Assembly: GCA_977017575.1 (NCBI GenBank)
Contig: CDRNVI010000139.1
Coordinates: 248,001 to 312,000 of the forward strand
From: Paramoeba atlantica
Taxonomy: Eukaryota > Protista > Discosea
Reading direction: 5' to 3'
DNA length: 64,000 bases
Made by a program: the position numbers and the translations under genes. Shown one piece after another: positions 1 through 64,000 of the stretch; the first letter of the stretch is position 1, and each line of letters opens with the position of its first letter. The notes under the pieces were generated by a model. The model ran no database searches, was not told the DNA's origin, and was given only the letters and a program-made list of their open reading frames with translations.

Positions 1-2024
1 AACAATATTCCCATCTCTATCAACTCCAACACTTCTTGGTTCATCTAATTGACCTTCAAAAGAACCTTTTGAACCAAAAGAACGAAGAAAAGATCCATCA
101 TTATCAAACACTTGAATTCGATGATTTCCAGAGTCAGCAACAATAATTCTACCTTCTTCATCCACATCCACACCAAATGGTTCATTAAACTGACCATCTT
201 CAGAACCAAATGATCCAAAAGAATTGATCAATTCTCCTTCTTTGTTTAATATTACAACTCTTCTTTCAGATTGAGACCAATCAAGAACAACAATTTGATC
301 ATCCAATCCAATTGAAACATCAACAGGATCCAATTGAAGTGAATCAATTGTTTTCTGAATTGTTGATTCAATCATCTCATTTCCTTCTTTATCTCTCACT
401 TTCAATCCACACTCATCTTCACAAATAAAAATATTCCCATCACTGTTCACACTCACTCCCAAAGAATGATTCTCCAAAGGAAAAGAAGAAACTAAACGAA
501 AAGAATCACCACCACCATCACAACAAATCACTCCTTTCTTTCCAAATCCAACAACACCTCCTTCGGAAACAATATCATTTGCAGTTTGAAGAAGAGTTGA
601 AAAAAGTTGATCATCAAAAAAGAGAGAAACATCACAATCAGTTGTTGTTGTTGTTGTTGTTGTTGTTGTTGGGGTGTTGGATAAATGAATAATTGAATCT
701 TTTCTGATTCTCAAATCTTCTTTCTCCAATTCTATTTCTTTCTTTTCAATTCTTTTCTTTTCTAATTTCTCTTCTAATTCTTTCATTTCTTCTTTAATCT
801 TTTTTCTTTTCTTTTCCACAATCTCCAATCTTTTCTCCAATTTATCTCCAATCTTTACAACTTCATTCCTTTTCTTCAAAATACTTTCTTCAATTGATTT
901 CACTTTCTCAATGTGTTGAACATGTGTTTCAAGAACACAATGAAGGCAAACAAAAGAAGAACATTGAAAACAATATCCACTGATTGTTTCAGATGGGTGT
1001 TTTGAACATTCTCTCTTCTTCAAATTCTCCAATCCCACTCCCATCACCACCCCCTCCTCCAATCTTCTTCTTCCACCTCCTTCATCACTCTGCTCACCAC
1101 AAGGAACATTTTGTTGTTGAGATCGTTTGTGATTTCGAGAGAAAATGGAAGAAGAGTGAGATGGATCACAAGAATCACAAATAAAGACTTTACAATCAGA
1201 ACAATACATTCGAGTTCGTTCTCCACACGCTCCAAAATTCGCACATCTTCTTTTAGCTTCTCCTGATTTGTTTGTGTGTTTAAAAAAGAAGAAACTAAGT
1301 CAGTGAATGTTGGGTTTAGGAGTGGGTGGGTCGAATTGGGTGGTCTTGGGGCTCAGTTCAAAAACAACAAGAGAAAAGAAAGAAAAAAAAAAAAAATCAA
1401 GAAGATGAAACCTGAAGTTGATTGTTGGGATAAAGAGATCAAATTTGAAGAAAAAAGAACATCAATTGTTTCTGGAATCAAATAATTCATCGAAAGTGTT
1501 TCAATGCTTTCACATTCGTTCATTTCTCTACAAACTGGACATTTCACTCCTTCCAAAGAAGAAATGGGAGAGGGGGAAGAGGAAGAAGAAGAAGAGGAAG
1601 GATTTTGAAGGAGAAAGAGTTTGTTGAGACAAAGAGAACAAAAAGAAAGACCACAACAAGGTAACAACCTTGGTTCTTTTTCCCAACTCATCAATTCCAA
1701 ACATATTCCACATTCAAATCTTTTCTTTTTCTCTTCTTCTTCCTTTCTTCTTCTTTTCATCATCTCTTCTTCTCTTTCTCTTTCCCTTTCTCCTTCTTCT
1801 TCTCGTTCTCTCTTTCCAAGAACATCCTCACTTCTTCTTTCTCTTTCTTCCTCTCCTTCTCCTTCTCTTTCATCATCAACATTGTCATCTTCAATTACAA
1901 CAACAACATCAACATCATCTTCTTTCTCTTTCTTTCCTCTTTTGGTTTTTCTCTTTTTCTCACTTTCTAATTCTCTTCCTTGTTCTTCTCCTCCTCTTTT
2001 TCTCTTTCCTCTTTTTTCACTCAT
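1..2024 (-). CDS. TRIM-NHL paralog A (RING-B-box1-B-box2-CC-NHL), 3' end runs off window
   Basis: Exon 1 2024-1412 (MSEKRGKRKR...CGIC...CCGLSFCSLC...CPVC); GT-AG phase-1 intron 1411-1263; exon 2 from 1262 with B-boxes, coiled coil and NHL blades continuing past base 1. Confidence 0.85.
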
Positions 2025-2571
2025 TTTGTTTCTCTTCTCTGTGTGTGGGGGAAAGAGATTAATCAAAACAAAAAAAGGAACAAAAGTGGGAACAAAAAAC
2101 ACATACAAAAAAGAAAAAAAAAGAAAATAAAGGAAAATGAAAGTATAAAAATGAAAAAAAACCTGATTCCAATCTTTTCAGATTCTCCCAAAAAATCTCC
2201 CATCAGAGAGAGAAGAGAGAAGAGAGAAGAGGTTCTGATAACTATATACTTTTTTCAAAAAAAATTGAGACAAAAAGAAAGAGAAGAAAAAATGGAAAAA
2301 CAAATAGAAAAAAAGAAAATACAAACATCCCCCAAAAAATTCAGAAAAGAAGAGAGGGAGAGAGGAAACGTCCAAAAACAAATTGTCAAAGAGAAACAAA
2401 AACAAAACAAAAACAAGGGATAATTTTTCTCCAAAGTGGTTCAAAAACCCAAAAAGAGATAAAAGAGACAAGACGCTCAAGAGTGAACAAACAAAAGGAA
2501 ATAAGAGAAAGAAAGAAAGAACAAGAGAGACAAGAAAAACAGAAAAACAGAAAAAAAGAGAAAAAAAGGGA

Positions 2572-2660
2572 GGGTACGAAAAGAGGATTCAAAACTTTTT
2601 AAACCTCTGAAAAAAATATCACAAAAACACACCAAAAACTTTTTCTTTTTTTCGTTGTTC
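2572..2660 (+). promoter_or_regulatory. Conserved divergent-spacer block, A/B
   Basis: GGGTACGAAAAGAGGATTCAAAACTTTTTAAACCTCTGAAAAAAATATCAC...; found once in each of 7 head-to-head spacers; regulatory role inferred. Confidence 0.5.
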
Positions 2661-3221: not shown

Positions 3222-4785
3222 ATGAGTGAAAAAAGAGGAAAAAGAAAGAGAGGAGGAGAAGAAACAGAATTAGAGAGTGAGAAAAAGAGAAAAACCAAAA
3301 GAGGAAAGAAAGAGAAAGAAGATCAAAGAACAGATTGTGGTGATGATGATGTTGTTGTTGTGATTGAAGATAACGATGATGAAAAAGACCAAAGAGGGGG
3401 AAAAAGTGAAGATGTTCTTGGAAAGAGAGAACAACAAGTGGGACAAAATGAAGGAGAATTTGAAGAAGAGAGAATGTTCAAAACACCCATCTGAAACAAT
3501 CTGTGGATATTGTTTTCAATGTTCTTCTTTTGTTTGTATTCGTTGTGTTCTCGGAACACATGATGATCACAGAAAGAAAGTGAAATCGATTGAAGAAAGT
3601 ATTTTAGAGAAAAGGAATGAAGTTGTGAGGATTGGAGATAAATTGGAGAAAAGATTGATTGAGATTGAAGCAGAAAGAAAAAGGATTGAAAAAGAAATGA
3701 AAGAATTAGAAGAGAAATTAGAAAAGAAAAGAATTGAAAAGAAAGAAATAGAATTAGAGAAAGAAGATTTGAGAATAAGAAAAGATTCAATTATTCGTTT
3801 ATCCAACACACCAACAACAACAACTGATTGTGATGTTTCTCTCTTTTTTGATGATCAACTTTTTTCAACTCTTCTTCAAACTGCAAATGATATTGTTTTT
3901 GAAGGAGGTGTTGTTGGATTATTCTCAAAACCAAAGAAAGGAGTGATTTGTTGTGATGGTGGCGGTGATTCGATTCGTTTTGTTTCTTCTTTTCCTTTGA
4001 AGAATCAACCTTTTGGAATGAGTGTGAACAGTGATGGGAATATTTTTATTTGTGGAGAGGAGGGTGGATTGAAAGTGAGAGATAAAGAAGGAAATGAGAT
4101 GATTGAATCAACAATTCAGAAAACAATTGATTCACTTCAGTTGGAGCCTGTTGATGTTTCAATTGGATTGGATGATCAAATTGTTATTCTTGATTGGTCT
4201 CAAGCTTGTTGTCGAGTTGTAATATTAAACAAAGAAGGAGAATTGATCAAATCTTTTGGATCAGTTGGTTTTGAAGAGGGTCAGTTTAATGAACCATTTG
4301 GTGTGGATGTGGATGAAGAAGGTAGAATTATTGTTGTTGATACTTTGAATCATCGAATTGAAGTGTTTGATAATGATGGATCTTTTCTTCATTCTTTTGG
4401 TTCAAAAGGTTCTTTTGAAGGTCAATTTTATGAACCAAGAAGTGTTGTAGTTGATAGAGATGGGAATATTGTTATTTCTGATTTTGGGCGAATTCAAGTG
4501 ATGGATATTGAAGGGAATTTTATTCGATGTTTTGGAACATTTGGTTCAGGTGATTCTCAATTGAACTATCCAGAAGGTGTTGATGTGGATGGGGAAGGTA
4601 GAATTGTTGTTTGTGAAGAAGGAAATGGGAGGGTGTGTGTGTTTGAGAAAGATGGAACATTTCTTTTTTCATTTGGTGCCAAACCTCACATGGGGGATCC
4701 TCGTGGGGTTGTTGTTGATTTATTTGGAACAATTATTGTTTCAGATTATGAGAAAAAGTCAGTTGAATTGTGGAAATCATTTTGA
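3222..4785 (+). pseudogene. TRIM-NHL paralog B, RING/intron/B-box1 deleted; B-box2-CC-NHL ORF remains in another frame
   Basis: ATG 3222 frame stops at 3494; the junction at ~3452 joins exon 1 to ENLKKRECSKHP through shared GGAGAA; ORF 3364-4785 holds B-box2, coiled coil and 6 NHL blades. Confidence 0.8.
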
Positions 4786-6058: not shown

Positions 6059-8284
6059 TCAAAATGATTTCCATAAATCAATTGCCATTTCATAATCTGA
6101 AATAATAATTGTTCCAAATGAATCAATAACAACCCCATTAGGAGTCTCCATGTGATCTTGACCAAACGAAAAAAGAAAGGTTCCATCTTTCTCAAACACA
6201 CTCACTCTCCCATTTTCTGTATCACAAACAACAATTCTACCTTCCCCATCAACACCAACACCTTCTGGATACTTGAGTTGAGAAACACCTGAACCTTTTG
6301 TTGCAAAACATCGAATAAAATTCCCTTCAATATCTATCACTTGAATTCGATGATTCCCAGTATCAGAAATAACAATATTCCCATCTCTATCAACTGCAAC
6401 ACTTCTTGGTTGATTAAATTGCTTAAATTGACCTTTAAAAAATCCTATTGAACCAAAAGAACGAAGAAAAGATCCATCATTATCAAACACTTGAATTCGA
6501 TCATTCAAAGTATCACAAACAATAATTCGACCTTCTTCATCCACATCCACACCATGTGGTTCATTAAACTGACCATCTTCAAAACCAACTGATCCAAAAG
6601 ATTTGATCAATTCTCCTTCTTTGTTTAAGATTACAACTCTATGAGAATGTTGAGACCAATCAAGAACAACAATTTGATCATTCAATCCAATTGAAACATC
6701 AACAGGTTGCAATTGAAGTGAATCAATTGTTTTCTGAATTGTTGATTTAATCATCTCATTTCCTTCTTTATCTTTCACTCTCAATCCACCATCCTCTTCA
6801 CAAATAAAAATATTCCCATCACCGTTCACACTCACTCCCAAAGGATATTTCTTCAAAGAAAAAGAAGAATCACGTGAAACTCCACCACCATCACAACAAA
6901 TCACTCCTTTCTTTGGTTTTGAGAATAATCCATCAACAACTCCTTCAGAAACAATATCATTTGCAGTTTGAAGAAGAGTTGAAAAAAGTTGATCATCAAA
7001 AAAGAGAGAAACATCACAATCAGTTGTTGTTGTTGTTGTTGTTGTTGTTGGGGTGTTGGATAAACGAATAATTGAATCTTTTCTTATTCTCAAATCTTCT
7101 TTCTCTAATTCTATTTCTTTCTTTTCAATTCTTTTCTTTTCTAATTTCTCTTCTAATTCTTTCATTTCTTCTTCAATCCTTTTTCTTTTCCCTTCAATCA
7201 AAATCAATCTTTTCTCCAATCTATCTCCAATCCTCACAACTTCATTTCTCTTCTCCAAAATACTTTCTTCAATCGATTTCACTTTCTTTCTGTGACCATC
7301 ATGTGTTTCAAGAACACAACGAATACAAACAAAAGAAGAACATTGAAAACAATATCCACTGATTGTTTCAGATGGGTGTTTTGAACATTCTCTCTTCTTC
7401 AAATTCTCCAATCCCGCCACCCCCTCCTCTTCCAATCTTCTTCTTCCACCTCCCTCAACACCATCTCTTTCAGATCGTTTGTGATTTCGAGTGAAAAGAG
7501 TTGAAGTGTGAGAAGAATCACAAGAATCACAAATAAACATCTCACATTGGAAACAAAACATTCGAGTTTGTTCTCCACATGTTTCAAAATTCGCACATTC
7601 TGATCCACCATCTCCTATTTTGGTTTCTTTTTCATCAATTCAAGAGAAAAGGGAAGGTTGAAAAAGAAAAGAGACAATAAATTAAGAAAACGAAAAAAAA
7701 CTTGATTGTTGGGATAAAGAAATCAAATTTGAAGAAAGAAGAACATCAATCGTTTCTGGAATCAAATAATTCATTGTAAGTGTCTCAATGCTTTCACATT
7801 CGTTCATTTCTCTACAAACTGGACATTTCACTCCTTTCAAAAAAGAAGAGGAAGAGGAAGAAGAAGAGGGAGAAGAAGAAGAAGAAGAAGAAGAAGGCTT
7901 TTGAAGAAGAAAGAGTTTGTTGAGGCAAAGAGAACAAAAAGAAAGACCACAACAAGGTAACAACCTTGGTTCTTTTTCCCAATTCATCAACTCCAAACAG
8001 GTTCCACATTCAAATCTTTTCTTTTTCTCTTCTTCTTTCTTTCTCCTTCTGTTCATCACCTCTTCTTCTTCTTCTCTTTCTCTTCCTTGTTGTTCTCTCT
8101 TTCCAAGAACATCCTTACTTCTTCTTTCTCTCTGTTTTATTTCATCATCTTCTTCAATCACAACAACATCAGCATCGTCACAATCTGTTGTTTGTTCTTC
8201 TTTCTCTTTCTTTCCTCTTTCTATTTTTCTCTTTTTCTCAGTTTCCAATTCTCCTCTCTTTCTCTTTCCACTATTTTCACTCAT
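6059..8284 (-). CDS. TRIM-NHL paralog C, apparently intact (~712 aa)
   Basis: Exon 1 8284-7702, intron 7701-7615 (GT..AG, phase 1), exon 2 7614-6059; frames join without stops. Confidence 0.88.
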
Positions 8285-8898: not shown

Positions 8899-11680
8899 CC
8901 TCCTCTCTTCTCTCTTCTCTCTCTTCTCTCTCTTCTCTCTCTTCTCTTTCTTTTCTCTCTTCTCTCTTCTCTTCTCTCTTTCTTGTCGTTGTTGTTGTTG
9001 GTGGTTTCATTTTGGAACAGCTTTTTTTGAGAGTTTTTTTTTAGATTTTGGAATCCTCTTTGGCTTCGTTTTGTTTCATTTAGAGACAATTTGTTTTTGG
9101 AACTCTCTCTCTCTTTCATTGAGACCCTTCTTTTCGTTTTCGTTTGGGTCTCTTTGACAAATTGTTTTTGGACTTCTTCTCTCATTTTTTCGCTCTTTTT
9201 TTCTTCTTTGGTGTTTCTTTCATATTTTGGAGCTTCTTTGAGGGTTTTATTTTGTTTGGATTTTTCACTTTCTTCTTCTTTGCCAAAGAATCCTTTCGTG
9301 ACTTTTTGAGAGATGTTTGTTTTTTTTTTATTTTCTTTTTTCTCTTCTTTTTATTCCATTTTTGAAAAAAAAAATTGTCAGAAACCTCTCGATCTCTCTC
9401 TCTCTCTCTCTCTTTGGAGGACATTCTTTAAGAATTGGTTTCTCTCCGTTGTTCCTCTTTTTATTTGTCTTTTGTTTTGGCAAGAGCAGTCTCTTTGTGG
9501 GGTGATTCTTCTTTGTCATTTTCATTTTCAATCTCTCCATTTTCTTTAAAATTGTTCCCTTTTCACATTTTCTTTCCATTTTGTTTGTTGATTAATCTTT
9601 TTTCCCACACAGAGAGACAAAATGAGTGAAAAAAGAGGAAAGAGAAAGAGAGGAGGAGAACAAGGAACAGAATTAGAAAGTGAGAAAAAGAGAAAAACCA
9701 AAAGAGGAAAGAAAGAGAAAGAAGATCAAAGAACAGATTGTGGTGATGATGATGTTGTTGTGATTGAAGACGCTAGTGATGATGAAAAAGAACAAAGAGA
9801 AAGAAGAAGTGAAGATGTTCTTGGAAAGAAAGAACAACAAGTGGGACAAAATGAGGAGAAAGAGAAAGAGCAGAAGAAGTAGTGATGAAAAGGAGAAGAA
9901 AGGAAGAAGAAGAGAAAAAGAAAAGATTTGAATGTGGAATATGTTTGGAATTGATGAATTGGGAAAAAGAACCAAGGTTGTTACCTTGTTGTGGTCTTTC
10001 TTTTTGTTCTCTTTGTCTCAACAAACTCTTTCTTCTTCAAGATCCTTCTTATTCTTCTTCCTCTTCTTTCTCATCTCCCTCTCCCTCTTCTTCTTCCTCT
10101 TCTTCCGATTCTTTGAAAGGAGTGAAATGTCCAGTTTGTAGAGAAATGAACGAATGTGAAAGTGTTGAGACACTTTCGATGAATTATTTGATTCCAGAAA
10201 CGATTGATGTTCTTCTTTCTTCAAAGTTAATCTCTTTCTTCAATCAATCAGGTTTTCTCTCCACTTTTTGAGCTCTCACTTTCTTTCCTCTTCCTCTCTT
10301 TTTTTCTTTTTTTTTGAGAGAAAATGATTTCAAAGTTGAAAAACTTTTATTTTTTAATAAACAAAACAACAGGAGATGAATCAGAATGTGTGAATTTCGA
10401 AACATGTGGAGAACAAACTCGAATGTTTTGTTCTGATTGTAAAGTATTCATTTGTGATTCTTGTGATCCATCTCACACTTCTTCTGTTTTCACTCGAAAT
10501 CACAAACGATGTGAAAGAGATGGTGTTGAGAGAGGTGGAAGAAGAAGATTGGAAGAGGAGGGAGGGGTGGTGGTGGGAGTGGGATTGGAGAATTTGGAGA
10601 AGAGAGAATGTTCAAAACACCCATCTGAAACAATCAGTGGATATTGTTTTCAATGTTCTTCTTTTGATTGTCTTCGTTGTGTTCTTGGAACACATGATGA
10701 TCACAGAAAGAAAGTGAAATCAATTGAAGAAAGTACTTTGGAGAAGAGGAATGAAGTTGTAAAGATTGGAGATAAATTGGAGAAAAGATTGGTTTTGATT
10801 GAGAGGAAAAGAAAAAGGATTGAAAAAGAAATGAAAGAATTAGAAAAGAAATTAGAAAAGAAAAGAATTGAAAAGAAAGAAATAGAATTAGAGAAAGAAG
10901 ATTTGAGAATAAGAAAAGATTCAATTATTCGTTTATCCAACACACCAACAACAACAACAACAACAACAACTGATTGTGATGTTTCTCTCTTTTTTGATGA
11001 TCAACTTTTTTCGACTCTTCTTCAAACTGCAAATGATATTGTTTCTGAAGGAGGTGTTGTTGGATTACTGAAACCAAAGAAAGGAGTGATTTGTTGTGAT
11101 GGTGGTGGTGATTCTTTTCGTTTTGTTTCTTCTTTTCCTTTGAAGAATGGACCTTTTGGAGTGAGTGTGAACAGTGATGGGAATATTTTTATTTGTGAAG
11201 ATGGGGTTGGTGGATTGAAAGTGAGAGATAAAGAAGGAAATGAGATGATTGAATCAACAATTCAGAAAACAATTGATTCACTTCATTTGAAACCTGTTGA
11301 TGTTTCAATTGGATTGGATGATCAAATTGTTGTTCTTGATTATTCTCAAGATTGTTGTCGAGTTGTGATATTAAACAAAGAAGGAGAATTAATCAAATCT
11401 TTTGGATCAAGAGGTTCTGAAGATGGTCAGTTTAATGAACCATATGGTGTGGATGTGGATGAAGAAGGTAGAATTATTGTTTGTGATACTTTGAATAATC
11501 GAATTGAAGTGTTTGATAATGATGGATCTTTTCTTCATTCTTTTGGTTCAAAAGGTTCTTCTGAAGGTCAATTTAATCGACCTTCTAGTGTTGGAGTTGA
11601 TAGAGATGGGAATATTGTTATTTCTGATTCTTGGAATCATCGGATTCAAGTGATGGATATTGAAGGGAATTTTATTCGAT

Positions 11681-18662: not shown

Positions 18663-18753
18663 GGGAAAAACGAAAAAAAGAAAAAGTTTTTGGTGTGTTT
18701 TTGTGATATTTTTTTCAGAGGTTTAAAAAGTTTTGAATCCTCTTTTCGTACCC
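18663..18753 (-). promoter_or_regulatory. Conserved divergent-spacer block, E/F
   Basis: Reverse complement of 2572-2660. Confidence 0.5.
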
Positions 18754-24694: not shown

Positions 24695-24729
<35 letters not shown>

Positions 24730-48826: not shown

Positions 48827-48857
<31 letters not shown>

Positions 48858-49591: not shown

Positions 49592-50430
49592 ATGGACGAA
49601 AATCGTGTGTTGTTGGACCAGTTGATGGGGATCGACAGAACTGGAGACCTTCTTGAAACGAATGAGGTTCTCAGGATCGATGATCCCGATGTTTGTAAAA
49701 ACTATTTGTGTGGATTCTGTCTTCCTGAACTTTTTGCCAATACAAAGAGCGCGCTCGGTTTGCCTTTTGTTGTTTCTCCTTCTTTCTGTTTCTGTTTCTG
49801 AGGGGCACTGACTCCCCTTTTTTTTTGTCTTAGAGCCTTGTTTGAAAAAACATGATCATTTTCTTCAACAAGAATATCAACAGATGCTTGCAATTGGAAA
49901 AACCACCGAATACGGTTATGAGTTTGATTTTCTTCAAGAACTCGAGGCTCTCGTTAAAGTTCGAGATCGAAAGTTTTTTTCTTCTTTGTTTTTTCCCTTT
50001 TTCTTCTTTTGTTTTTGAAAGGAAAAAACTGACTTTGATTCTTCAAAGGGTCAAGCAAATCAAAGAAAGAATCGGAGAAGACAAGGTAGGGTTTTTTTTT
50101 TCTCGTTCTTGAGCCGCTTCTACATTTTTTCAAAAAATTGAGAGCTTTTTCACAGAATCAACCTGATGTTCTCACTCTGAAAGTTTGTGAGGAATGTGGA
50201 GGGATATTGGCTTCAAACGGCTCAGAAGATCGAATTCAAAGTCATCTACAAGGAAAACATCATCTTGGTTTTGTTCGAATTTGCGAAACAATTAAAGAAC
50301 TGAAGGTTTTCTTTTCATTTTTGTCTTGTTTTTCTTTGTTTTTTTTTTGGTGGTGGTTGTTTAATTTTTATGGTAGATGGTGAATCTCAAACCTGCAAAG
50401 AGAGAGGCTGGTGGTTCTGATGAGTCTTGA
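49592..50430 (+). CDS. LUC7: LUC7-family U1 snRNP protein, very short (~181 aa)
   Basis: Exons 49592-49757, 49834-49972, 50049-50085, 50156-50305, 50377-50430 splice in frame; LLDQLMG, DDPDVCKNYLCGFC..LF.NTKS.LEPC..KH and VCEECG......RIQSHLQGKHHLGF zinc fingers. Confidence 0.85.
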
Positions 50431-50567
50431 CTCGAAGAAAAGCAGGAAAAGAGAAGCAATTTATTTTTTTGCAGGTTTGATATTCACTTTCCTGGACCTT
50501 GGTTTCCCTTTTGCCTGAGAGATGAAAAGGGTGAGAAAAAGAAAAGAACCAACAAAAAAAGAAGAGG

Positions 50568-51271
50568 TCAAACCTCCACCCAGATGGTTAAGTTATCTCT
50601 CATGAGTTGCAATGACACACATGCTTCTTTATATGAGTCTTCATCAAGCATGTCCAACTCTCCAATCGCACTATCAAACCCCTCCTTGGTCATTTTGATT
50701 GCTTTGTCTTCCTCTTCTTCATCCCAAAGAAACATTGAATAATAAAGAACACAACGCAACCGAGTGCTCTGAGTGCTGTGCAAATCACTCAAACAAATCT
50801 TCAGCGATTGTTCATAATATTTCCGAGCCTCTTCAGGTTCATATGTTGTGTGATTTACACGCCCCTGATTGTGATTGGAATGAATCACAAAAAAAGAAAA
50901 AGAGAAAGAGGAAAAAATTACCAGCATCCAATAAATGGAGGCCAAGAATTCTGGGTGAGAGGTTGATTGGTGGTTGACCCAAGAGTTGAAAACAGATTTG
51001 GTCAACTCAACAATCTTTTGGTTCTCATCAAAGATTGGATCCCCTTCTTTTTCGAATGTTCCTGTGGTAAGAATCACCTGTTTTTCGTTATTATCCTGCA
51101 CGAGAGAAACCAGAAAGAAAGAGAAAAGAACAAAACCAACTGTTCCAGTGTATCAATAGAATCCCAGTCTGAGTTCGCTTGAATTCTCGGAAGAGCTTCA
51201 AGCAAAAGAACACTCTTCTTTTCCTTCACTCCTTCTTTCACTTTTGCCCAAGAATCATCCTCATTGGCCAT
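50568..51271 (-). CDS. Divergent 14-3-3-like protein (~201 aa)
   Basis: Exons 51271-51137, 51095-50922, 50864-50568; C-terminal TRLRCVLYYSMF...KEGFDSAIGELDMLDEDSYKEACVSLQLMRDNLTIW matches 14-3-3 helices 7-9. Confidence 0.8.
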
Positions 51272-51615
51272 TCCTTCCCTTTGTTGATAAGAGAATCAAG
51301 AAGAATCCCGAGAAGAAAATCCAAAAGAGAAAGGCGTGTCCAAAGGTGGTGAAACGTGATCATGAGAAAAAACAGATTCAGAGAAAAGAAAAGTTGTTCT
51401 CACAATTGCAAAACTCACCCACCTCTCTTGTTTTCCTCCTCTTTCCGCAAGTTGCGACCAACAAAAAATGAAATCCAGGAAAATCCAACCCAAGTTCCTG
51501 GAACTTTTGCTTTTTTTTTTTTCTTTCCACCTTTTTCTTTTTTTCGTCTTTTTCGTCTTTTTCGTCTTTTTCTCTTTCTCTCTTTTGTTTTTTTTGTTTG
51601 TGTGAGTCTTGAAAA

Positions 51616-54043
51616 ATGGGGAAAAAATCTTTGAAGGGAGAATTGGAAATTGCTCAGGAGGAGGGAGCTTTTGATCCTGCAGAAAGGTCTTCTTTTTTCT
51701 CTCTCTTTTTCCTCTTCTTCTCTCCTTTTTCTCAACTCCCCTCCCCTTTTTCCTTCTCTCTCCCCCTTCTCTCTCTTCTTTTCTCTCTCTCTTTCAAGAG
51801 ACAAAGTTCTCAAAAGAGTGGCACTTCGTTTCTTTGGCGCGTTATTGATTATGATGATTGTATTTGTGATTGTGTTGGCGTTGTACTTTGGGGCCATGTG
51901 GGATCCTTCGACAAGAAAACTTGATATTTTGATTGTCAACAAAGATCAAGGGCTCTCTTTTGGAGGACGTTTTGAATTTTTTTATTTTTTTTTTCTCTTT
52001 TTTTTCTCTTTTTTTTCTCATTTTGTTTATCGCTTTTTCTCTCTTTGTTTTTCGATTTTATAAAAAGTTTCAAAAGCATCAAAACTGAGAGTTTTTGTTG
52101 AATAGAAAATCTCTCTCTTGGTGATATGGTCACCGATTTTCTTTTGAGTAAAAAGGTTTTTTTTCTCTTTCTTTCTTTCTTTCTTTCGGTTTCGAGAAAT
52201 AAGAGAAAGAGAGACTTTTCTCCCCTTTGGAGATTCTTTCTTTTCTTCTCTCCCCCTCATCTCAAATGATTAGGTTCTCGATTTTAAAGAAGATTCTGAT
52301 CCTCTCTCTCGAGGGCCAGATTTTGGGAGACATCGTGTTGTCGAATACAAAGATTGGGGCGTTTTGACCATTCCAGGTTATTTTCCTTTTTTTTTTTGCT
52401 TTTTTTTTTGAATCAAATTGTTTCAAATAATAATAATTAAATCATGGTTTTTCATTCAATTGTCTTTAAAATGTCTTTGTTGTTCCAAGGAAAAAGAAAT
52501 TGATGGCTCTTTTTCAAATAGAGAATTACACCGTTAGTTATGTTCAAGCTTTGTTTCAAGATCTTGGGGAATACGAGAATCCAATTCGTTTTGATTATAA
52601 TCAAGGAAGACAAAAAACAACTGCTGGTTTGTGGAATAATAATTTTGCAGGAGAAAAGAGGGGGAAAAAAGAAAAGAAAAAAGAAAAAGAAATTTCTTTC
52701 CAAAAAATTATCAAAATCGATGAATAGATTATGATTCCTAATCATTCTCTTTGAAAAATAGATGCTGCAAAAAATATTGTTTCTGCATTGATTGCTGGGA
52801 TTAGTAAAGAATTAGCTATTAGAACCGTTTCTGGGGAAGTGCTTCCTTATAATTGTAGTGATGTCACTGCTGCAGCTGTTGTTGATCCTGTAATCCATTT
52901 CATTTTGATTTAATTTATTTCATCTTTTTTTCTTTTCTTAAAAAATCATTTTCTTTTCGCTTCTTTCTCTCTTTTCGAATAGATTTATCTCTTGATTGTT
53001 GTTTCATTTCCTGTCATTGCAAACGGATACAATTTTATCACTTATATGGGTGTCAATATTCTTTGGACTGTCGCTGCTTCATTGTTAAATATTTCAATGA
53101 CTGTCACACATCCTCTTTTTAAACAAGTCCTTCTTTTTTCCCTCTTTTATTACTCTCATCTTGAAGAATGCTTTGACCTCTAACTCTTCTGAATTTAGTT
53201 TTCTTTGACCGCAGTCCATGTCATTAGAACTGTCTGTATTTTAATTTGTTGCTTCTTTCAATCGTTATTCTTTATGAGCATTGTAGCAGGTTCTCTTCTC
53301 TCTCTTCTCTCTTCTCTCTTCTTCTCTTGATTTTTAACTTCATATCCTTTTATTCTCAGCTTACGCTGATGTGGATCAATTTGCACATTCATTTGGGGCG
53401 ATTTGGATGTATTTATTTTTTGTTTTAATCACCTTTCAAACTCTTCTCAATTTTTTGATTCGAATGTTGGGTGTTGCTGGACTGTTGTTATTGAGGTATT
53501 TTTCTTATTTTGCACTTTATTAATGTGGTTCCTAGCAAAAGAATTTGGTCAAACATCTCAAATTCTATTTATTTAGTCCTATCCTTGTTCTGCAAATCAC
53601 AACATCAAATGCCATCATTCACACCGACATGATGCCTGGTTTTTACGGAACCCTTGGAGTTGGTCTTCCATTTTACCATGCAATTGAGGTATTGTTATTA
53701 TTCAAATCAAATCAACTTGATCTTTTTTTTTATTTGGATTTGGTAGGGTCTCAGATTTATGGTCATTGGACAAACTGATTCACGAATTGGCACAAATATC
53801 GGTCTCTCTTTTTCATATTGTCAGTTTTTAAAAACTGCGAGTGTGTTTCTCAAATTTTTTCTTTCAGGAGTTCTCCTTGCTTATTTTGTTGGCTTTTATC
53901 TTCTCAATGCTCTGCTGTGGCACATCAAAGTCAAAAAATTTATCAAACAATACCAATCCGATACAGTTGTCGATGCGGGTACTTCCGCAGCTTTGGCGTT
54001 TCCTTCTGATCATGGAAAAGGATTTGCTGGTGCTTCATTTTAG
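51616..54043 (+). CDS. Multi-exon SNG1/DUF3533-like (ABC-2-type fold) membrane protein
   Basis: LYFGAMWDP..RKLDILIVNKD, DWGVLTIP, DYNQGRQKTTA, several TM segments, DMMPGFYGTLGVGLPFYHAIE; many short GT-AG introns, not all exons resolved. Confidence 0.6.
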
Positions 54044-54287
54044 AAAAAAAATTTTGATCGAGAGCCATGGAAAGAATGGATCTCTTTTCCCCAAGTCGAA
54101 GGACAACACCAAAAGATTTTTTTTCCTTTTTTTGACTTTAAATGTGGTTTGAGAGGAGAGTTTTGGCTTTTGTTTTGTGTTATTTTGAAAGGTCGAGCTT
54201 GTGAATCACAACAATGAGGGTTTTTGGGTGGTGATGGAAGAAGAGAAATGACGCAAAAAACAAAATGGAATAAAATTTCATTTCTTC

Positions 54288-56434
54288 CTACAAATGAGGA
54301 ACATTTTCGACTTCCCTTGCAGGAAGCATTTGGTTCTGTATTTTCTCTGCCTCTTCTTCTGTACATTGAAAAGCCGCTATCAAATTCTTTTTCTTTTCTT
54401 CATCATTTTTTTCACCAGTCTGGATGAGAAATTCTTGAGGAGGTCCAGGATATCCAAGAGATTGCCAGGCTTTAGTTGCAAATAAGTCTTTTCCTTTCAT
54501 CATAGACGTTAGCATAGATCCAATCACACCAACTAAAAAGGAGAAAAGGGTCGAATTTTTGAGAAAAACGAGGAAATCATATTTCATCATGGAAAAAAAG
54601 AAAAAAAGAAAATCAAACAATATGGAATTTGTCCTGCTCCCGCCTCTGGACCAATCGGGACAAGCATCGCACTTTCGACTTTCGAATACCTAAACCAAGA
54701 GACAATGTCAAAACAATCCAAAAAAACAAAATCAAAAATGCAAACGATTTCATTGGAGTCTTCGATATGGAGGCAAGGATATTTCTTGCAACGACGTTTC
54801 TGTCCCAAATATAAATTTTGACAAAAAATAAACATGAAAATTTATTTGAAAGTAAAAGCAAAAGAGAATAGGAAAACAATTTCAAGGTGAGAAGAAAAGA
54901 AAAGAAGTCAAATACCCTTGTAAACGAGCAGCAAAGCTAACTTTCTTATCCGCATCACAACAATCTCCAATTGCGAAAATATGTTTCCAGATCAATCTTG
55001 GAGTTTCAACTTGCATATACTCATTAACATGAATTTCTCCCTAAAAAGAGAAAGAGAGAGTTAGAAGAAAGAGAAAAGTTGAAAACAATTTCCAAAAATA
55101 ATAAAGAAAATAAAAACATGATCATTTACAGCTTTTTTTAGAGCCTCTTGATATGAACTACAATTAATATGAGATCCATTACAAAAGAAGACAAGATCAG
55201 TTGGGATTTTAACTCCTGAAACTGTCATCGCAGAAATAGGACCCAATAAATATCGAGAGTTTGCCACTAAAAAAAAGAATAAGAATTTTTTCATTCAGAA
55301 ACAAAAAAGGAGACTCTTTCTTGATATTGCAAGACTCAAAAACTACTCGAGAAAAATCTTTTCAAAAAAGAATGAAGAAATACTCAACCATTCGCTTCTT
55401 CCAATGATTCTCCCAAAGAACTCAAATCAACTCTCTCATTCAACAACACTTCCACCCCTGTTTTTTTCAAAAGCTCCAACAATTTCTGACTCAATTTCAA
55501 ATCAAGATCATCTCTTGAAGAAAGAAGACGATTTCCTGAGTGAACAAGAAAGATTTTTTTGTCTTGGTAAGAGAGAGAGATTTCTCCTGCAAGTTCAATG
55601 CCAACTGGCCCTCCCCCAATGACCAGGATGGTTTTGGATTTGACGATGTTTGCTAAGAGAGAGAGGAAAATGAGGGATAACCTCTTTCATTTCATTGTCT
55701 ATAGAGGTATATTTTTCTTTTATCCTTCTCATTCACCACTTCCCCTCTCCTTTCACCATCAGAAAAAAAAATTCCCCAAACCTCTCAAATCTTTGTACAT
55801 CTCAGAAACCCTCATCGCAGAATCAAAAGGGATTTTGGCAGGAAAAGCATATGAAGTTCCTGTTGCCAATACCAAAAAATCAAATTTAATTTTTTCTTCA
55901 TGTCCAAAGATTTCCACATACGATGAAGTGATGTTTGTCACATCTCCCTATTTTGCGAAGTTGTTGAAAGAAAAGAGAGCGAGAGAGAGAGAATCAGAAC
56001 TGACAGAGATCATTTTTTTGTTTCTTTTGCCATCTCCTTTGCTCTCTTTTTTCTTAAATCATCCTCAAAGTGATTTTAAAAGTTACCTTGATCACAGAAC
56101 CAGTTTTGAGAAGTTTGTCATATGGGATACAAATCGCTTTTTCGAAATCTGTTGTTGAACCGCTGGAAGCAAAGGAGTGAATCGGAGAAAGAAGAGGGGA
56201 AAAGTGAGAGAAAAAAATGAAACCGAAGTGCGCCAACGTTGTGAAAGAAATAGTCTTTTCTGTCAATCAAAACACAGTTTGCTTTTCCTTCAAGAGCCTA
56301 GTCTCGAAGAATTAAGCTTTTTTCTTGCAGAGAACGATTTTGGAGAAAAAAGAGAAAGAAAAAGAAAGAACCTTCGCACATTCAATCCCACCGTATCCCC
56401 CACCAACAATCACAACAACAGGTTTCCCAGCCAT
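54288..56434 (-). CDS. AIFM2/FSP1(AMID)-like FAD/NAD(P)H oxidoreductase, multi-exon
   Basis: MAGKPVVVIVGGGYGG, VLIDRKDYFFHNVGALR, FDFLVLATGTSYAFPAK, IFAIGDC, MLVPIGPEAGAGQI, TSMMKGKDLF. Confidence 0.8.
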
Positions 56435-57278
56435 ATCAATGGATCGAGATTGTCCTCCCCCCATTCTCCCCACATCAGTTTAAACGGTCCTCTTTTCTCT
56501 TTCTTTTTCTCTTCTTTTTCCAAGAACCGAAACAAAACAAAATTAACCAGAACAAATTTTTTTCATCCCGTGTTCAATTCCCTTTCGGGATTCTTTTTTT
56601 TTCCTTTTTTTTCTTTTTTTTTTCGTTTTTTTTGTTTTTCCTCCCGCTCTTCTCTTCTCTTTTCTCTTCTCTCTTTCTTTTCTCTTTTGTCTCCGATTTT
56701 TTTTTTGGGATCACATTCTTTGGAAAAAACCTCAAGACAGCTTTTTTTGTTTCTTTTTCTTCTCCATTTTCCTTCCTCTTTTCTCTCTTCTCTCTCTTCT
56801 CTCTCTTTCTTTGTGCCTCTTTTTGGTCTTTTTGGGGTTGTTTTTGTCTTTCTTCTTCTTCTTCTTCTTTTGAGGTTTTTGGTTTTTGGGATCTCGTTCT
56901 CTCATCTTTTCGTTTGAATTGTCTTTCTTCTCCTTCTTCTTTGGTGGTTCCTCACTTTTTGAGAACTGTTTGTCTTTTTTCTTCTTTTTTTCTTTTTTTT
57001 TCTCGTATCTCAATTTATTGAAAAAACAATTCTCAGAAACCTCTTTCTCTCTCTCTCTCTTTGTGGGGACATCTCTATTTTCTTGATTGTTCCTCATTTC
57101 ATTTTGTTTTGGGTCTCAGCAGTCTCTTTGTGTGTGTGTGTGTATGTGTTGGGTGGGCATAGTTTTGGTTTCGTTTTCTTTTTCTTTTTCATTTCATTCT
57201 AATTTTGTGTGTGTGATTTTTAATTGTTTTTCCCTCCCTCACATTTCTTTTCTTTTCAATCCCACAGAGAGAGACAAA

Positions 57279-59444
57279 ATGAGTGAAAAAAGAGGAAAGA
57301 GAAAGAGAGGAGGAGGAGAAGAAACAGAATTAGAAAGTGAGAAAAAGAGAAAAACCAAAAGAGGAAAGAAAGAGAAAGAAGATGATGTTGATGTTGTTGT
57401 AATTGAAGATGACAATGTTGGTGAAAAAGAACAAAGAGAAGATGTTCTTGGAAAGAGAGAAGAAGAAGTGATGACTAAAAGAAGAAGAAAGGAAGAAGAA
57501 GAGAAAAAGAAAAGATTTGAATGTGGAATATGTTTGGAATTGATGAGTTGGGAAAAAGAACCAAGGTTGTTACCTTGTTGTGGTCTTTCTTTTTGTACTC
57601 TTTGTCTCAACAAACTCTTTCTTCTTCAAAATCCTTCCTCTTCTTCTTCTTCTTCTTCCTCTTTGAAAGGAGTGAAATGTCCAGTTTGTAGAGAAATGAA
57701 CGAATGTGAAAGCGTTGAAACACTTTCGATGAATTATTTGATTCCAGAAACGATTGATGTTCTTCTTTCTTCAAATTTGATCTCTTTCTCCCAACAACCA
57801 GGTTTTCTTTCTTCCTTTTATTGTGAGAAAGTTATTTCAAAGTTGAAAAAACATGTTTTTTGAAAAAACAAAACAATAGGAGATGGATCAGAATGTGTGA
57901 ATTTCGAAACGTGTGGAAAACAAACTCGAATGTTTTGTCCTCTTTGCAACATGTTTATTTGTGATTCTTGTGATCTGTCTCACACTTCTTCTATTTTCAC
58001 TCGAAATCACAAACGATGTGAAAGAGATGGTGTTGAGGGAAGAGGTGGAAGAAGAAGATTGGAAGAGGAAGGAGGGGTGGTGGGAGTGATGGGATTGGAG
58101 AATTTGAAGAAGAGAGAATGTTCAAAACACCCATCTGAAACAATCAGTGGATATTGTTTTCAATGTTCTTCTTTTGTTTGTCTTCGTTGTGTTCTTGAAA
58201 CTCATGTTCAACACAATGAGAAAGTGAAATCAATTGAAGAAAGTATTTTAGAGAAAAGGAATGAAATTGTAAAGGTTGGAGATAAATTGGAGAAAAGATT
58301 GATTGAGATTGAAAAGAAAAGAAAAAGGGTTGAAAAAGAAATGAAAGAATTAGAAGAGAAATTAGAAAAGAAAAGAATTGAAAAGAAAGAAATAGAATTG
58401 GAGAAAGAAGATTTGAGAATCAGAAAAGATTCAATTATTCGTTTATCCAACACACCAACAACAACAACAACAACAAAAACAACTGATTGTGATGTTTCTC
58501 TTTTTTTTGATGATCAACTTTTTTCAACTCTTCTTCAAACTGCAAATGATATTGTTTCTGAAGGAGGTGTTGTTGGATTACTGAAACCAAAGAAAGGAGT
58601 GATTTGTTGTGATGGTGGTGGTGATTCTTTTCGTTTTGTTTCTTCTTTTCGTTTGAAGAATCAACCTTTAGGAGTGAGTGTGAACAGTGATGGGAATATT
58701 TTTGTTTGTGAATTTCGGGGTGGATTGAAAGTGAGAGATAAAGAAGGAAATGAGATGATTGAATCAACAATTCAGAAAACAATTGATTCACTTCAGTTGA
58801 AACCTGTTGATGTTTCAATTGGATTGAATGATCAAATTGTTGTTCTTGATTGGTCTCAAGATTCTCATAGAGTTGTAATATTAAACAAAGAAGGAGAATT
58901 GATCAATTCTTTTGGATCAGTTGGTTCTAAAGATGGTCAGTTTAAGAGTCCATGTGGTGTGGATGTGGATGAAGAAGGTAGAATTATTGTTTGTGATACT
59001 TTGAATAATCGAATTCAAGTGTTTGATAATGATGGATCTTTTCTTCGTTCTTTTGGTTTAAAAGGTTCTTCTGAAGGTCAATTTGACCAACCTCAGAGTG
59101 TTGTAGTTGATAGAGATGGGAATATTGTTATTTCTGAGACTTTGAATCATCGAATTCAAGTGATGGATATTGAAGGGAATTTTATTCAATGTTTTGGAAC
59201 ATATGGTTCAGGTGATTCTCAATTGCACTGTCCAAAAGGTGTTGATGTGGATGGGGAAGGTAGAATTGTTGTTTGTGATAGAGGAAATAGAAGAGTGAGT
59301 GTGTTTGAGAAAGATGGAACATTTCTTTTTTCATTTGGTAAACATCACATGAAGAATCCTATTGGGGTTGTTGTTGATTCATTTGGAACAATTATTGTTT
59401 CAGATAATGAGAAAAAGTCAATTCAATTTTGGAAATCATTTTGA
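57279..59444 (+). CDS. TRIM-NHL paralog P, apparently intact (~695 aa)
   Basis: Exon 1 57279-57801, intron 57802-57879, exon 2 57880-59444. Confidence 0.88.
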
Positions 59445-61136: not shown

Positions 61137-63636
61137 CGGGTTCCTTCCAGGCCAAAAGACTAATTAGGCCCCTATTTTTGACTCCTTTTTTGAAGCCACT
61201 GGTGGGTGGAGGGGGAGATTTTTTTTGATAAACTTTTTAATAAAGATCTTTTAAACAAGAATATCAAGAAATATTTGTCCAAATATTGTTTTTTGAAAAA
61301 AAAAATTGAGTCACCAAAAAAAAAAAAACATCATTTTTCAAAAGGACTAATTAGTCCTCAGTCATGTGCCTGCTCATATGGTCAGCAAAGCAACCTGAAC
61401 AAAAAATGAGTGTTTGATCACAGGAGCAATAGGTTCGAACTTTCTTTGTACAATTTGTCCCATTTGCATCTACTCTTCTGGTACTCTTGTCTGGCTTCAG
61501 TCCAATTACCATTTCGCCAAACTCCAGCAAAGTTGGGCTTGGTCATCAGATGATGTTCTACACGAGTTGGGAGTGGTATTCGCAGGTTATAGCCTTCATC
61601 CAAGGGATGATTCTGAGAGAGTAGACCTTGGGCAACCTCAAAACGAAATTCTGCAAAGGAGAGCTCTTTGGCTTGGGGGAAAAAGCGCTGAAATATGAGG
61701 AAGGCATTGACTTCCACAACTGCAAGAATGAAAGCAAACTGCCTGTGGACCCATTTTTTGGTCTTCCAGGAACTCTCCAAGGAGAGAGAACCTTGCCTCA
61801 GTTGGTTGTGATCATCCACACAATGCCTGGTTTGATAGTAAAAGTCAAGAGGCTGAGTATATCGCAGGGAGAGTCTTTGGCCTTCAAGCTTGCGATTTCG
61901 TGGGCGACCAGTGGGAAAAGAAGTTCCCCAGGTATTAATCATTATAGAAGAGTGATGAACATCTTGGAAAGCCTCCACATAGAATTTATGACCTCTCAGA
62001 GATCCTTTCTTCACTTTCACATAACCAGGTTCCTTCTCCTTGAGGTGTGCAACAATCTCTTCCCCTGGAATTCCTTTGGGCCAATATCGTTTTTTCTTTA
62101 CAACTGAAGTACAATACAATCCCTTTTCTAGAAGTTGAATACAACCTTCCAACACACAAAAACCACTATCCAAAGCAACTACTCGACCAGTTCCCCAAAT
62201 TCCCTCAGTCATTCTAAGCATCAAACCAACAGTTTTCGCTCCAGAACCAGATGGAGGTTGAAACTTGGGCAGGCCCATTTCAGGAGGATGGGACTTTCCT
62301 TCCACAATTTCAAGAAAGAATATCACTCTAGTCTCCCCACAACCAATTGTATGATATTCATTTCCAAAAGGATGAGGTTTCCTCTGAACAAACATCCAAC
62401 CAGGAGCCCATTTACAAAACCACACCACCATAGACTCATCCAGACAGACCTGCCAACTTGGAACAAAGATGGTCTTCATCTTTTCATTAAAAGCAGCAAT
62501 CAGGGGTCGAATTTCCCACATACGGTCTGTGTAAGAGGGTTTTGCAGAGAGAGGAGCAAGTTTAAGAGAGGAGACAATCATATCAAACCGATTTCTACTG
62601 ATATATTTCCCAAGATAAGGCAGTGTACCACGCAAGGAAGATCCAGCTGAATCCTTTGAAATTCGAAAAAAATCCCTTCTTTTATGTCCTGGGTAGAAAG
62701 ACATAATCTGGCGCAAGGCAATAAAATCAAGCATTTCAGCTTCAGTGAAGTTCAAAGAATGGTTAAACTCATTTGTTGCTTTCAGCACATCAGTTTTTAG
62801 AAAGGTTAGAGGCAGAACTTGGAGAAAAATATCGAGGGGAGTGGGGACATGAACAGCATCAAAGCGAATTCTTGTACAGGCCTTGAGGTCTTGTGCTCCT
62901 ATCACAGCACGAGCATCAGTTGTTGAGGAAGACCACTCAGAAACAAAGGAAAGATCATTTTCAACGAGTTCTGCTGCATTGTCTTCCCCTTCCTCCTCAA
63001 TATCAGAGCAAGATTCAGTATCTTCATCATCAGTATCAGATGAGCCCAAAACAGGCACAGAGGTTGTTGATGCCTGGGATGAACCAGAACTTGATCCTCC
63101 TGAGCCAGAAGAGGATGATGAAGATGAAGATGGATGAGTTGAAGTCCCACAACCCTCTGAGACATCCACTTCTCCGACAAACTTTAAATTTTCAGGGAGA
63201 GCCAGAAGGTAATCATTCTGGAAGACAGGAGAACGAAGCAAAACTACCATCTGAGATTTCCTGTCATAGTTCTGAAGTTCCACCCTTTTCACCCTGAGTG
63301 AAGAGAGAGATGCTCCTTGATATCGGTCACCAAAATGTTTCCTTAGAAGATGAGAAGGGCGAAGGTTCACAGCTTTGCAGAACCAAATAGTACCCTCCTT
63401 CAATTCTTCAATTCTTGGGGAAGTTGATCCAGAACTCATTTTTCTCACCACTGTAACTTTTTTCATTCAGACTTTCTGAGAAAGGCATTGTGATGAAAAT
63501 CAAGAAAAAACCTCAAAGAAACGCAAAAGAAAGTAAAAAAAAAAAAAAAAGTTCAAAAATGAGCTTTATTTTGGCCAACAAACAGGAGCCTAATTAGGCC
63601 CAAAAAGACTAATTAGGCCCCCCTGGAAGGAACCCG
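61137..63636 (-). mobile_element. piggyBac-like DNA transposon, copy 2 (2500 bp)
   Basis: Same 15-bp TIRs (61137-61151, 63622-63636); TSD CAAA (61133-61136, 63637-63640); ~99% identical to copy 1 by manual comparison. Confidence 0.93.
61351..63466 (-). CDS. piggyBac-family transposase; catalytic core open, +1 shift at ~61464 removes the Cys-rich tail
   Basis: 682-aa ORF 63466-61418; TGCAAATGGG versus TGCAATGGG in copy 1; the corrected frame ends at TAA 61353-61351. Confidence 0.85.
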
Positions 63637-63771
63637 CAAACAAGAAAAAAGAAACAAAGAGAAAAAGAAAATTTTAACAAAGAACACACCTCCACTTCAC
63701 CCACACTTCTCAAAAAAAAAGAAACAAAAAAGAGAAAGAAAATGAAAAAAAAATCAAACCTTTTCCTTCTC

Positions 63772-64000
63772 TCAGTCCCAAAATTCAATTGACTTTTTCG
63801 CATAATCTACAACAATAATTGTTCCAAATGAATCAACAACAACCCCAATAGGATTCACCATGTGATGTTTACCAAATGAAAAAAGAAATGTTCCATCTTT
63901 CTCAAATACACACACCCTCCCATTTCCTGAATCACAAACAACAATTCTATCTTCCCCATCTACATCAACACCTCCTGGAGAGTTCAATTGAGAATCACCT
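63772..64000 (-). CDS. 3' end (NHL blades 5-6) of TRIM-NHL paralog Q
   Basis: SPGGVDVDGEDRIVVCDSGNGRVCVFEKDGTFLFSFG...SIEFWD*. Confidence 0.85.
   Translation of the reverse strand, partial: GDSQLNSPGGVDVDGEDRIVVCDSGNGRVCVFEKDGTFLFSFGKHHMVNPIGVVVDSFGTIIVVDYAKKSIEFWD

Follow-up and report, generated by a model that had tools for sequence, protein, structure and literature searches.

Can the TRIM-NHL architecture, in which a RING, B-boxes and a coiled coil (together the RBCC module) precede an NHL propeller, form a diversified multigene family outside animals, and what would such a family recognise? The question is raised by a 64,000-nt stretch of DNA (contig CDRNVI010000139.1, positions 248,001 to 312,000; the whole stretch is called the window here), in which tblastn with one spliced copy and Pfam located 16 full or near-full TRIM-NHL loci, two internal fragments and one more locus that runs off the right edge. 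In animals, TRIM proteins play central parts in innate immunity and development, and their NHL class is treated as a small, conserved, animal-only group of RNA regulators. An earlier note on the window had described 17 loci and two fragments, with array genes cut at both edges and eight intact against seven decayed copies, and had read them as the product of birth and death; tblastn, Pfam and spliced gene models returned the same counts, and duplication, frameshifts, deletions and a transposon insertion are all seen among the copies. The array is real, and copies arise and are lost within it. Our preferred account, to which we give an even chance, is that the locus belongs to a real, expressed, lineage-specific TRIM-type family whose propellers form a recognition repertoire aimed at fast-changing partners.

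The TRIM-NHL protein and its altered RING

Each locus pairs a RING exon with a B-box/NHL exon, as seen by tblastn and by Pfam on long open reading frames (ORFs). The two exons are separated by a single short phase-1 GT-AG intron that is conserved in all copies; its length varies from 78 to 152 nt, and the donor CAG/GTTT and the acceptor ACAG/GAGATG are conserved. In the intact reference copy, T06 (19355..21665, plus strand; 726 aa), exon 1 (19355-19970) encodes a K/R/E-rich N-terminal part and the RING, the intron spans 130 nt (19971-20100), and exon 2 (20101-21665) encodes B-box1, B-box2, the coiled coil and the NHL domain. The proteins thus read, in order, as a K/R/E-rich N-terminal tail, a variant RING, B-box1, B-box2, a coiled coil, a poly-Thr linker and an NHL propeller. 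Pfam NHL matches reach E-values down to 6.5e-33, and zf-B_box scores above its cut-off, most copies having two such stretches. A comparison of 18 paralogues shows little or no change at the Cys/His ligands of B-box1 and B-box2, and B-box1 is missing in T11 and T02. The most conserved part of the protein is the coiled-coil segment, with an entropy of 0.54 bits and a ratio of nonsynonymous to synonymous substitution rates (omega) of 0.39.

An AlphaFold model of exon 2 (pLDDT 81.8) contains a helix of 73 residues (119-191), a second helix (212-228) and a propeller of six blades and 23 strands, with pLDDT above 90. The best matches among solved NHL structures are Thin/TRIM32, TRIM71/LIN-41, TRIM2, TRIM3, Brat and Mei-P26 (Foldseek TM by target 0.76-0.86, with 0.84-0.86 for Thin, TRIM71, TRIM2 and TRIM3), and phmmer relates the NHL domain to solved structures with E-values of 1e-83 to 1e-25. 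No copy has a Pfam match to Filamin, the linker being a poly-Thr stretch and a short helix, which excludes the TRIM2/3/71 subtype, not class VII, that of the TRIM-NHLs. Neither is there a Pfam match to SPRY or PRY in the copies, whose C-terminal domain is NHL. The architecture is that of a TRIM-NHL protein, with the layout of TRIM32 but two B-boxes. T11 (30099..32157, minus strand), a divergent copy, lacks B-box1, yet its RING exon and its B-box2-coiled-coil-NHL exon are open and a GT-AG intron joins them in frame; the family therefore contains both the one-B-box and the two-B-box layouts of animal TRIM-NHLs.

The RING departs from the canonical form. The Cys pairs CxxC...CxxC...CxxC are present, and all 17 array-type RINGs that were read carry PCCGLSFC, in which Leu takes the place of the His zinc ligand and a further Cys stands just before ligand 3. 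Divergent paralogues retain PCGHSFC or PSCLHSFC (CGH or CLH), and one of them, P0078, bears precomputed RING-family matches. The RINGs compared lie in the window (one exon, for example, at 19661-19870), at 5036 and 10148 in locus L002 and at 8020 in locus L004. Between ligands 6 and 7 the RING is interrupted by a poly-Ser/Pro tract of about 15 to 60 residues. Since the change is fixed in the subfamily, it is either tolerated or selected. The earlier note had called the genes complete RING-B-box-B-box-coiled-coil-NHL genes and had suggested that their products may be ubiquitin-ligase sensors; the B-boxes, the coiled coil and the NHL domain stand, but the RING falls below the Pfam cut-offs and has its His ligand replaced, which weakens the ligase part of the proposal.

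The charge of the propellers bears on the kind of ligand. In the eight intact copies, the net charge of the NHL domain is -10 to -28 and that of the top loops -12 to 0, a crude measure taken from sequence, and both values speak against a nucleic-acid ligand. RNA-binding NHL domains bind RNA through a strongly positive top face (PMC9070667). With propellers this acidic, a protein would be a likelier target than a nucleic acid, and the sensing of RNA or DNA suggested in the earlier note appears unlikely. The K/R-rich N-terminal tails suggest a nuclear location.

Transcription and splicing of the family follow the gene models. A 2015 run whose label is probable RNA, a single unstimulated data set, supplied contigs that were placed on positions 17001-23000; exons there have an RNA word depth of 43-199, both spacers one of about 0, and the bin with the intron one of 5. 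In one RNA contig, 19967, where exon 1 of T06 ends, is joined to 17341, where exon 2 of T05 begins on the opposite strand; this joint is the predicted exon-exon junction, as it would occur in the spliced mRNA of some paralogue. Exon depth and joint together establish transcription and splicing for the family; the transcription on which the earlier note's proposal depended is thus seen at family level, not for each intact copy.

The family extends far beyond the window. A word-based protein search with the B-box/coiled-coil part found at least 90 family ORFs on about 48 contigs, all from assemblies of the same organism, so that the genome-wide family to which the earlier note pointed is a large one, and the same search gave no match beyond this genome's own paralogues. 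Among 1.84 billion representatives, a profile built from B-box1, B-box2 and the coiled coil returned 19 proteins below 1e-30, which are probably the family itself, then a few unnamed environmental B-box-NHL proteins, and after these the TRIMs of molluscs and echinoderms (1e-13 to 1e-10). Beyond the genome, the nearest B-box-NHL relative is P0398, on a 149.7-kb contig of the JGI metagenome 3300045996; the contig is gene-dense, the neighbours of P0398 include several RCC1-repeat genes and long unannotated ORFs, and the contig may come from another protist or from a large virus.

Variation across copies and propeller faces

The copies differ pairwise by 5-15% of their DNA, with a mean pairwise dS of 0.145, and the gene tree of exon 2 is star-like with short branches. 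Spacers are homologous between units, only patchily, at 65-90%. The copies have multiplied recently, by segmental duplication that took the spacers along. A fixed pair of one plus-strand and one minus-strand gene was considered as the duplication unit and ruled out, because the star-like exon-2 tree mixes the two orientations.

Selection was estimated with the GY+F3X4 codon model on 22 genes with an intact exon 2, taken from the window and from four further contigs. Omega is 0.40 for the B-box/coiled-coil part and 0.44 for the propeller strands, with twice the log-likelihood difference from omega = 1 (2dlnL) amounting to 81 and 42, respectively. Sites were also classed by their entropy in 52 other paralogues. 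The 134 conserved sites give an omega of 0.21 (2dlnL 86.87), the 91 intermediate sites 0.58 (2dlnL 12.06) and the 41 hypervariable sites 1.59, with a 2dlnL of 7.06 against omega = 1 (about p = 0.008). Of the 41 hypervariable sites, 29 belong to D-to-A or B-to-C loops, and a further six open the A strands that follow. Across 64 paralogues, the top (DA or BC) loops exceed the bottom loops in entropy (Mann-Whitney p = 7e-6) and contain 26 of the 35 most variable positions. In a neutral simulation, 0.04% of copies were free of stops at the observed divergence, as against 8-9 of 16 in the window. Purifying selection acts on the scaffold and the RBCC module, and the ligand face either changes freely or is driven to do so; as judged on the predicted model, the placing of the variability on the canonical NHL ligand-binding face is supported. 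A Nei-Gojobori estimate on the eight intact window genes gave an omega of 0.42 for RING, B-boxes and coiled coil and of 1.30 for NHL (bootstrap 0.99-1.72). The latter was discarded, given that the F3X4 codon model yields 0.65-0.75 for NHL, a lower value which indicates that the counting estimate is inflated in this AT-rich genome.

Several observations weigh against a diversifying repertoire. The codon-model value for the NHL domain as a whole is below 1, the top-face loops (D-to-A and B-to-C) taken together have an omega of 0.99, not significantly different from 1 (2dlnL 2.25), and the hypervariable-site test is not significant when confined to the eight window genes (2dlnL 2.28). The hypervariable sites were picked on genes related to those tested and are not fully independent of them, and the assignment of top and bottom loops follows the propeller convention on a predicted model. 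The star-like tree suggests gene conversion between copies, which breaks the single-tree assumption and is uncorrected in the codon models. Positive selection is not robustly shown. To these points are added the Pfam RING scores of 16-23.5 bits, under the curated cut-offs of 25-28; the lost His ligand, which makes ligase activity uncertain and may have abolished it; and the RNA, in which no expression is assignable to a single copy because Logan unitigs are short and the paralogues similar.

Under the repertoire account, each paralogue would dimerise through its coiled coil and display two copies of a private NHL top face, and the top face of each paralogue would bind a different target, probably a protein. 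The surface concerned would be made of about 40 hypervariable residues in the D-to-A and B-to-C loops, on the top face where known NHL domains bind ligands. Binding would be coupled through the RING/B-box module to ubiquitin-type signalling or to sequestration of the target. Copies are lost again through frameshifts, deletions and transposon insertion, and selection keeps reading frames, the B-box/coiled-coil part and the propeller scaffold. Fast duplication, decay and change of the top face would be in keeping with a repertoire that follows changing partners, be they viruses, intracellular bacteria, prey or mobile elements. We infer dimerisation, ligase activity, the kind of ligand and a role in defence, and to read the family as a repertoire of sensors is plausible.

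The TRIM5 cluster of primates and the finTRIMs of fish are tandem clusters with pseudogenes, a conserved RBCC module and hypervariable C-terminal loops under diversifying selection (see the summary in PMC3503706). The array resembles them in its tandem copies, pseudogenes and recent duplication, in its constrained RBCC module and in the variable loops of its recognition domain. It differs from them in that their recognition domain is B30.2/SPRY, whereas the array uses an NHL propeller, and in that their hosts are vertebrates, whereas the array probably belongs to a host that is neither a vertebrate nor any other animal. Multigene TRIM families in which the recognition domain varies are already known; the novelty here lies in the altered RING, in a host that is probably no animal and in variation carried by the NHL domain.

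Alternative explanations and the host

The alternative that survives best, which we consider rather unlikely, is that the copies encode endogenous post-transcriptional or proteostasis regulators, like Brat, LIN-41, TRIM2/3 and TRIM32, multiplied for dosage or for sub-functionalised control and without any non-self role. It accords with the closest solved relatives, which are developmental or RNA-regulatory TRIM-NHLs, with the transcription of the family under ordinary conditions, and with the N-terminal tails, whose K/R-rich composition may resemble nuclear targeting signals. Thin, also known as Abba, is the best sequence and fold match of the array NHL domain, and TRIM32/Thin has the same succession of RING, B-box, coiled coil and six-bladed NHL, with no filamin or Ig domain in between. 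However, TRIM32 has one B-box instead of the two of most array copies, and it is a single conserved gene with a canonical C3HC4 RING, whereas the array family counts dozens of copies with a RING that lacks the His ligand. The long poly-Ser loop in the RING, the poly-Thr linker and the acidic propellers are not features of TRIM32.

Other animal proteins allow the same comparison. TRIM71/LIN-41, TRIM2, TRIM3, Brat, Mei-P26 and NHL-2 share the NHL fold (TM by target 0.74-0.86). TRIM71 also shares B-box1, B-box2 and the coiled coil, and in animal RNA-regulatory TRIM-NHLs, as in the array, the top ligand-binding face differs between paralogues (PMC9070667). By contrast, TRIM2, TRIM3 and TRIM71 carry the filamin domain that the array copies lack. 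The electropositive RNA-binding face of Brat, LIN-41 and Mei-P26 (PMC9070667) is a poor fit to propellers that are acidic by their net sequence charge. RNA-regulatory TRIM-NHLs form a small, conserved set that has been reported in animals alone (PMC4460960, PMC3503706). Low numbers and conservation are the norm for housekeeping regulators (PMC4460960), but half of the array copies are broken, and constraint is weakest on the ligand face.

It could also be that a protist captured an animal TRIM-NHL gene, from a host or from prey, by horizontal transfer and then expanded it, in which case the architecture would say nothing about a pre-animal origin. The TRIM module has been stated to be metazoan-specific (Sardiello et al. 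2008, PMC2533329), only TRIM37-like genes have been found outside animals, with the NHL-bearing subfamily C confined to animals (Marin 2012, PMC3503706), and the TRIM-NHL family is conserved among metazoans (Laver et al. 2015, PMC4460960). The literature thus assigns NHL-type TRIMs to animals only, in line with the earlier note, which had called them mostly metazoan. Literature searches for NHL-TRIM expansions or protist TRIM-NHLs found nothing specific, and Grau-Bove 2015 does not mention TRIM, B-box or NHL. Sardiello et al. themselves raised transfer as a caveat for protist B-boxes (PMC2533329). The array NHL repeats are up to about 45-50% identical to Thin/TRIM32, as transfer would have it, but they are also 29-46% identical to bacterial NHL proteins, which makes repeat identity a weak guide to origin. 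Moreover, divergent family members, with 44-55% identity, sit singly among ordinary genes on many contigs, a scatter that suggests long residence in the genome. Transfer is an unlikely source of the family.

Relaxed constraint after runaway duplication, with the array consisting mostly of redundant DNA that drifts towards pseudogenes and the variability of the NHL loops as its by-product, is in our judgement quite unlikely. Seven of 16 loci are broken, apparently active transposons hit the array, the maximum-likelihood omega of the top loops is about 1.0 and so not clearly above 1, and the eight-gene test of hypervariable sites is not significant, all of which counts in favour of drift. Against it stand the frames of about 700 codons kept open in 8-9 copies, compared with the simulated 0.04%, the omega of 0.21 at scaffold sites and of 0.40 in the B-box/coiled-coil part, the value of 1.59 at hypervariable sites (2dlnL 7.06), and the transcription and splicing of the exons.

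An unrecognised or divergent animal as host, or animal DNA in a mixed assembly, would turn the array into one more invertebrate TRIM expansion. In the ESM Atlas, Mollusca, Cnidaria, Echinodermata and Chordata have RING-B-box-NHL clusters of 50-478 members, a fact that also tells against the singularity of the array, and TRIMs of molluscs and echinoderms are the nearest named B-box/coiled-coil matches. The names of the contigs, moreover, resemble those given in long-read assemblies of metagenomes. In oysters, modules associated with immunity include dozens of expressed TRIM2/45/71-like transcripts (PMC9892467). The statement in the earlier note that tandem expansion is not typical of NHL TRIMs was, in the light of these clusters and transcripts, too strong. 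The expansions of molluscs, cnidarians, echinoderms and cephalochordates have the same domain set as the array, without filamin, in large clusters; they supply the nearest named matches, and the oyster transcripts track immune phenotypes (PMC9892467). Nevertheless, they differ from the array in being only remotely related to it by sequence (the B-box/coiled-coil E-values of 1e-13 to 1e-10), they are barely described in the searchable literature, and the array host groups with Amoebozoa in one gene tree.

That tree was built from a complete copine gene on a neighbouring contig of the same assembly, whose best named matches are just 45-52% identical. In the maximum-likelihood tree, the gene groups, at an SH-aLRT of 98, with ichthyosporeans and with the Amoebozoa Stenamoeba, Cochliopodium, Filamoeba and Arcella, outside both the bilaterian/cnidarian and the sponge copine clades. 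The genome is very gene-dense and its introns are short, at 78-152 nt in the array, and the B-box/coiled-coil part has no word-level match outside this genome. An animal host is improbable. The host is probably amoebozoan-like and not an animal, a placement that comes from one gene of a family with paralogues and that agrees with the protist-like genome described in the earlier note. A fragment of CLU, the clustered-mitochondria protein, at 12268-14172 of locus L005 (contig ctg3942l) has as its nearest Atlas cluster one that is mostly labelled Euglenozoa (score 0.83); this weak lead conflicts with the copine tree and is treated as a lead only.

Finally, an assembly artefact in which a few loci were falsely multiplied or stitched together is very unlikely, close to negligible, since the copies, besides differing by 5-15% of their DNA, show lesions, spacer sequence and a transposon insertion (with its own target duplication) that are peculiar to single copies, proteins identical to the window's occur in the protein collection on separate contigs of 19.9, 23.1 and 45.4 kb, and five other contigs of assembly ERZ24900291 have the same alternating layout, against which stand the short-read Logan unitigs of three DNA runs, too fragmented to span one unit and uninformative either way, and the fact that no spanning long read was seen. 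The array therefore stands where the earlier note had named mis-assembly as its weak point.

The copies, their surroundings and the meaning of the family

Along the window, which has a G+C content of 34% throughout, gene orientation alternates strictly between minus and plus, and the array is interrupted by an island of four other genes, which breaks the run at 49.3-57.0 kb, and by two piggyBac-like transposons. Among the 16 loci, 8-9 are intact and 7 broken. The spliced models of seven copies (T03, T05, T06, T08, T13, T14 and T18) are complete, with 691-730 aa. Besides the reference copy T06, these are T03 (6059..8284, minus; 712 aa, intron 7615-7701), T05 (15774..18028, minus; 724 aa, intron 17339-17418), T08 (22909..25080, minus; 691 aa, with NHL blades 3-4 the most divergent), T13 (36006..38312, minus; 730 aa), T14 (39195..41465, plus; 729 aa) and T18 (57279..59444, plus; 695 aa from the conserved start MSEKRGK). 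Two more are probably usable: T11, described above, which is splice-compatible without B-box1, and T15 (42045..44176, minus), which has an intact RING-to-NHL part in a 678-aa ORF and a frameshift confined to the N-terminal low-complexity part.

The broken copies have decayed in different ways. T02 (3384..4785, plus) is truncated, without RING and B-box1, and its B-box2-coiled-coil-NHL ORF of 473 aa is still open. T04 (9885..14431, plus) has an N-terminal frameshift, and a piggyBac-like element splits its NHL blade 5, the NHL tail being in frame again from 14180. Several frameshifts mark T09 (26297..28017, plus), whose closest relative is T01; T12 (32830..34648, plus) has a frameshift in NHL blade 3, and T17 (47057..49284, minus) one between coiled coil and NHL. 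T16 (45449..46594, plus) has lost the RING, the B-boxes and most of the coiled coil through a large internal deletion, its NHL ORF remaining open. T01 (1..1763, minus) is cut by the left edge, so that NHL blades 5-6 are missing and its state is not judgeable; its upstream N-terminal part is out of frame. At the right edge lies T19 (63769..63996, minus), the NHL tail of a further copy. The two fragments are a piece of RING exon within a tail-to-tail spacer (21935..22063, plus) and a piece of NHL (29011..29213, minus).

Both transposons look recently active. They belong to the DDE_Tnp_1_7 family, are 99.2% identical to each other and end in 15-nt perfect terminal inverted repeats, CGGGTTCCTTCCAGG. 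The first (11681..14179, plus; 2499 bp) is inserted within the NHL exon of T04, with a target duplication CGAT and a transposase ORF shortened to 522 aa. The second (61137..63636, minus; 2500 bp) has a target duplication CAAA and an intact 682-aa transposase ORF (61418-63466). Both target duplications are of 4 bp and are not TTAA, the usual piggyBac target.

The spacers hold an element whose conservation far exceeds that of the coding exons. This nearly invariant core, about 95 nt long, occurs exactly once in each head-to-head spacer, in seven copies and in either orientation (one of them at 18670..18765, plus). Its central 51 nt, at 2572-2622, 8810-8860, 18703-18753, 25667-25717, 32294-32344, 38522-38572 and 45064-45114, show 0-1 mismatch, and the core is flanked by a (GA)n tract on one side and a T/C-rich tract on the other. 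A diverged copy with 3 mismatches is found at 461-505 of locus L001. The core was considered as an RNA gene, and this was ruled out: it has no Rfam match and folds no better than shuffled sequences (z -0.7, both strands). A promoter or other regulatory element common to the genes is one possible reading of the core, and a small mobile element is another. Scans with Rfam and for tRNAs, covering the window and two further loci, found nothing besides tRNAs. Four tRNA genes lie in locus L002 (14838-14908, 16898-16968, 20139-20209 and 20415-20485), beside a TRIM-NHL paralogue with a canonical RING; they form two pairs with identical Rfam scores within 6 kb and look like a small local duplication.

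The island inside the array (49586..56473) consists of a LUC7-like gene (49586-50383, plus), a divergent 14-3-3-like gene (about 50568-51100, minus), a gene for a membrane protein of the DUF3533/SNG1-like kind (about 51650-54040, plus) and one for an AIFM2-like oxidoreductase (about 54290-56473, minus). These four genes are ordinary and intron-rich. Spacers are full of AG-rich and CT-rich low-complexity sequence.

That an amoebozoan-like protist carries a full TRIM-NHL family of about 100 members, with the NHL top face serving as a diversifying recognition surface in the manner of the B30.2 loops of TRIM5 and the finTRIMs, is put forward tentatively, as a possibility somewhat short of an even chance. 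A TRIM-NHL family of that size in a non-animal would be new, and it would shift the origin or the spread of the architecture beyond animals: the RBCC-NHL module would either predate them or have been captured by transfer. NHL would be added to B30.2/SPRY as a TRIM domain that serves as a variable receptor, and TRIM-based, receptor-like repertoires would have arisen independently in a unicellular lineage, possibly with a changed set of RING zinc ligands. The naturally varied propellers would offer a ready series of putative binding surfaces on one scaffold, and the family would be a tractable case for learning how unicellular eukaryotes build diversified intracellular recognition systems.

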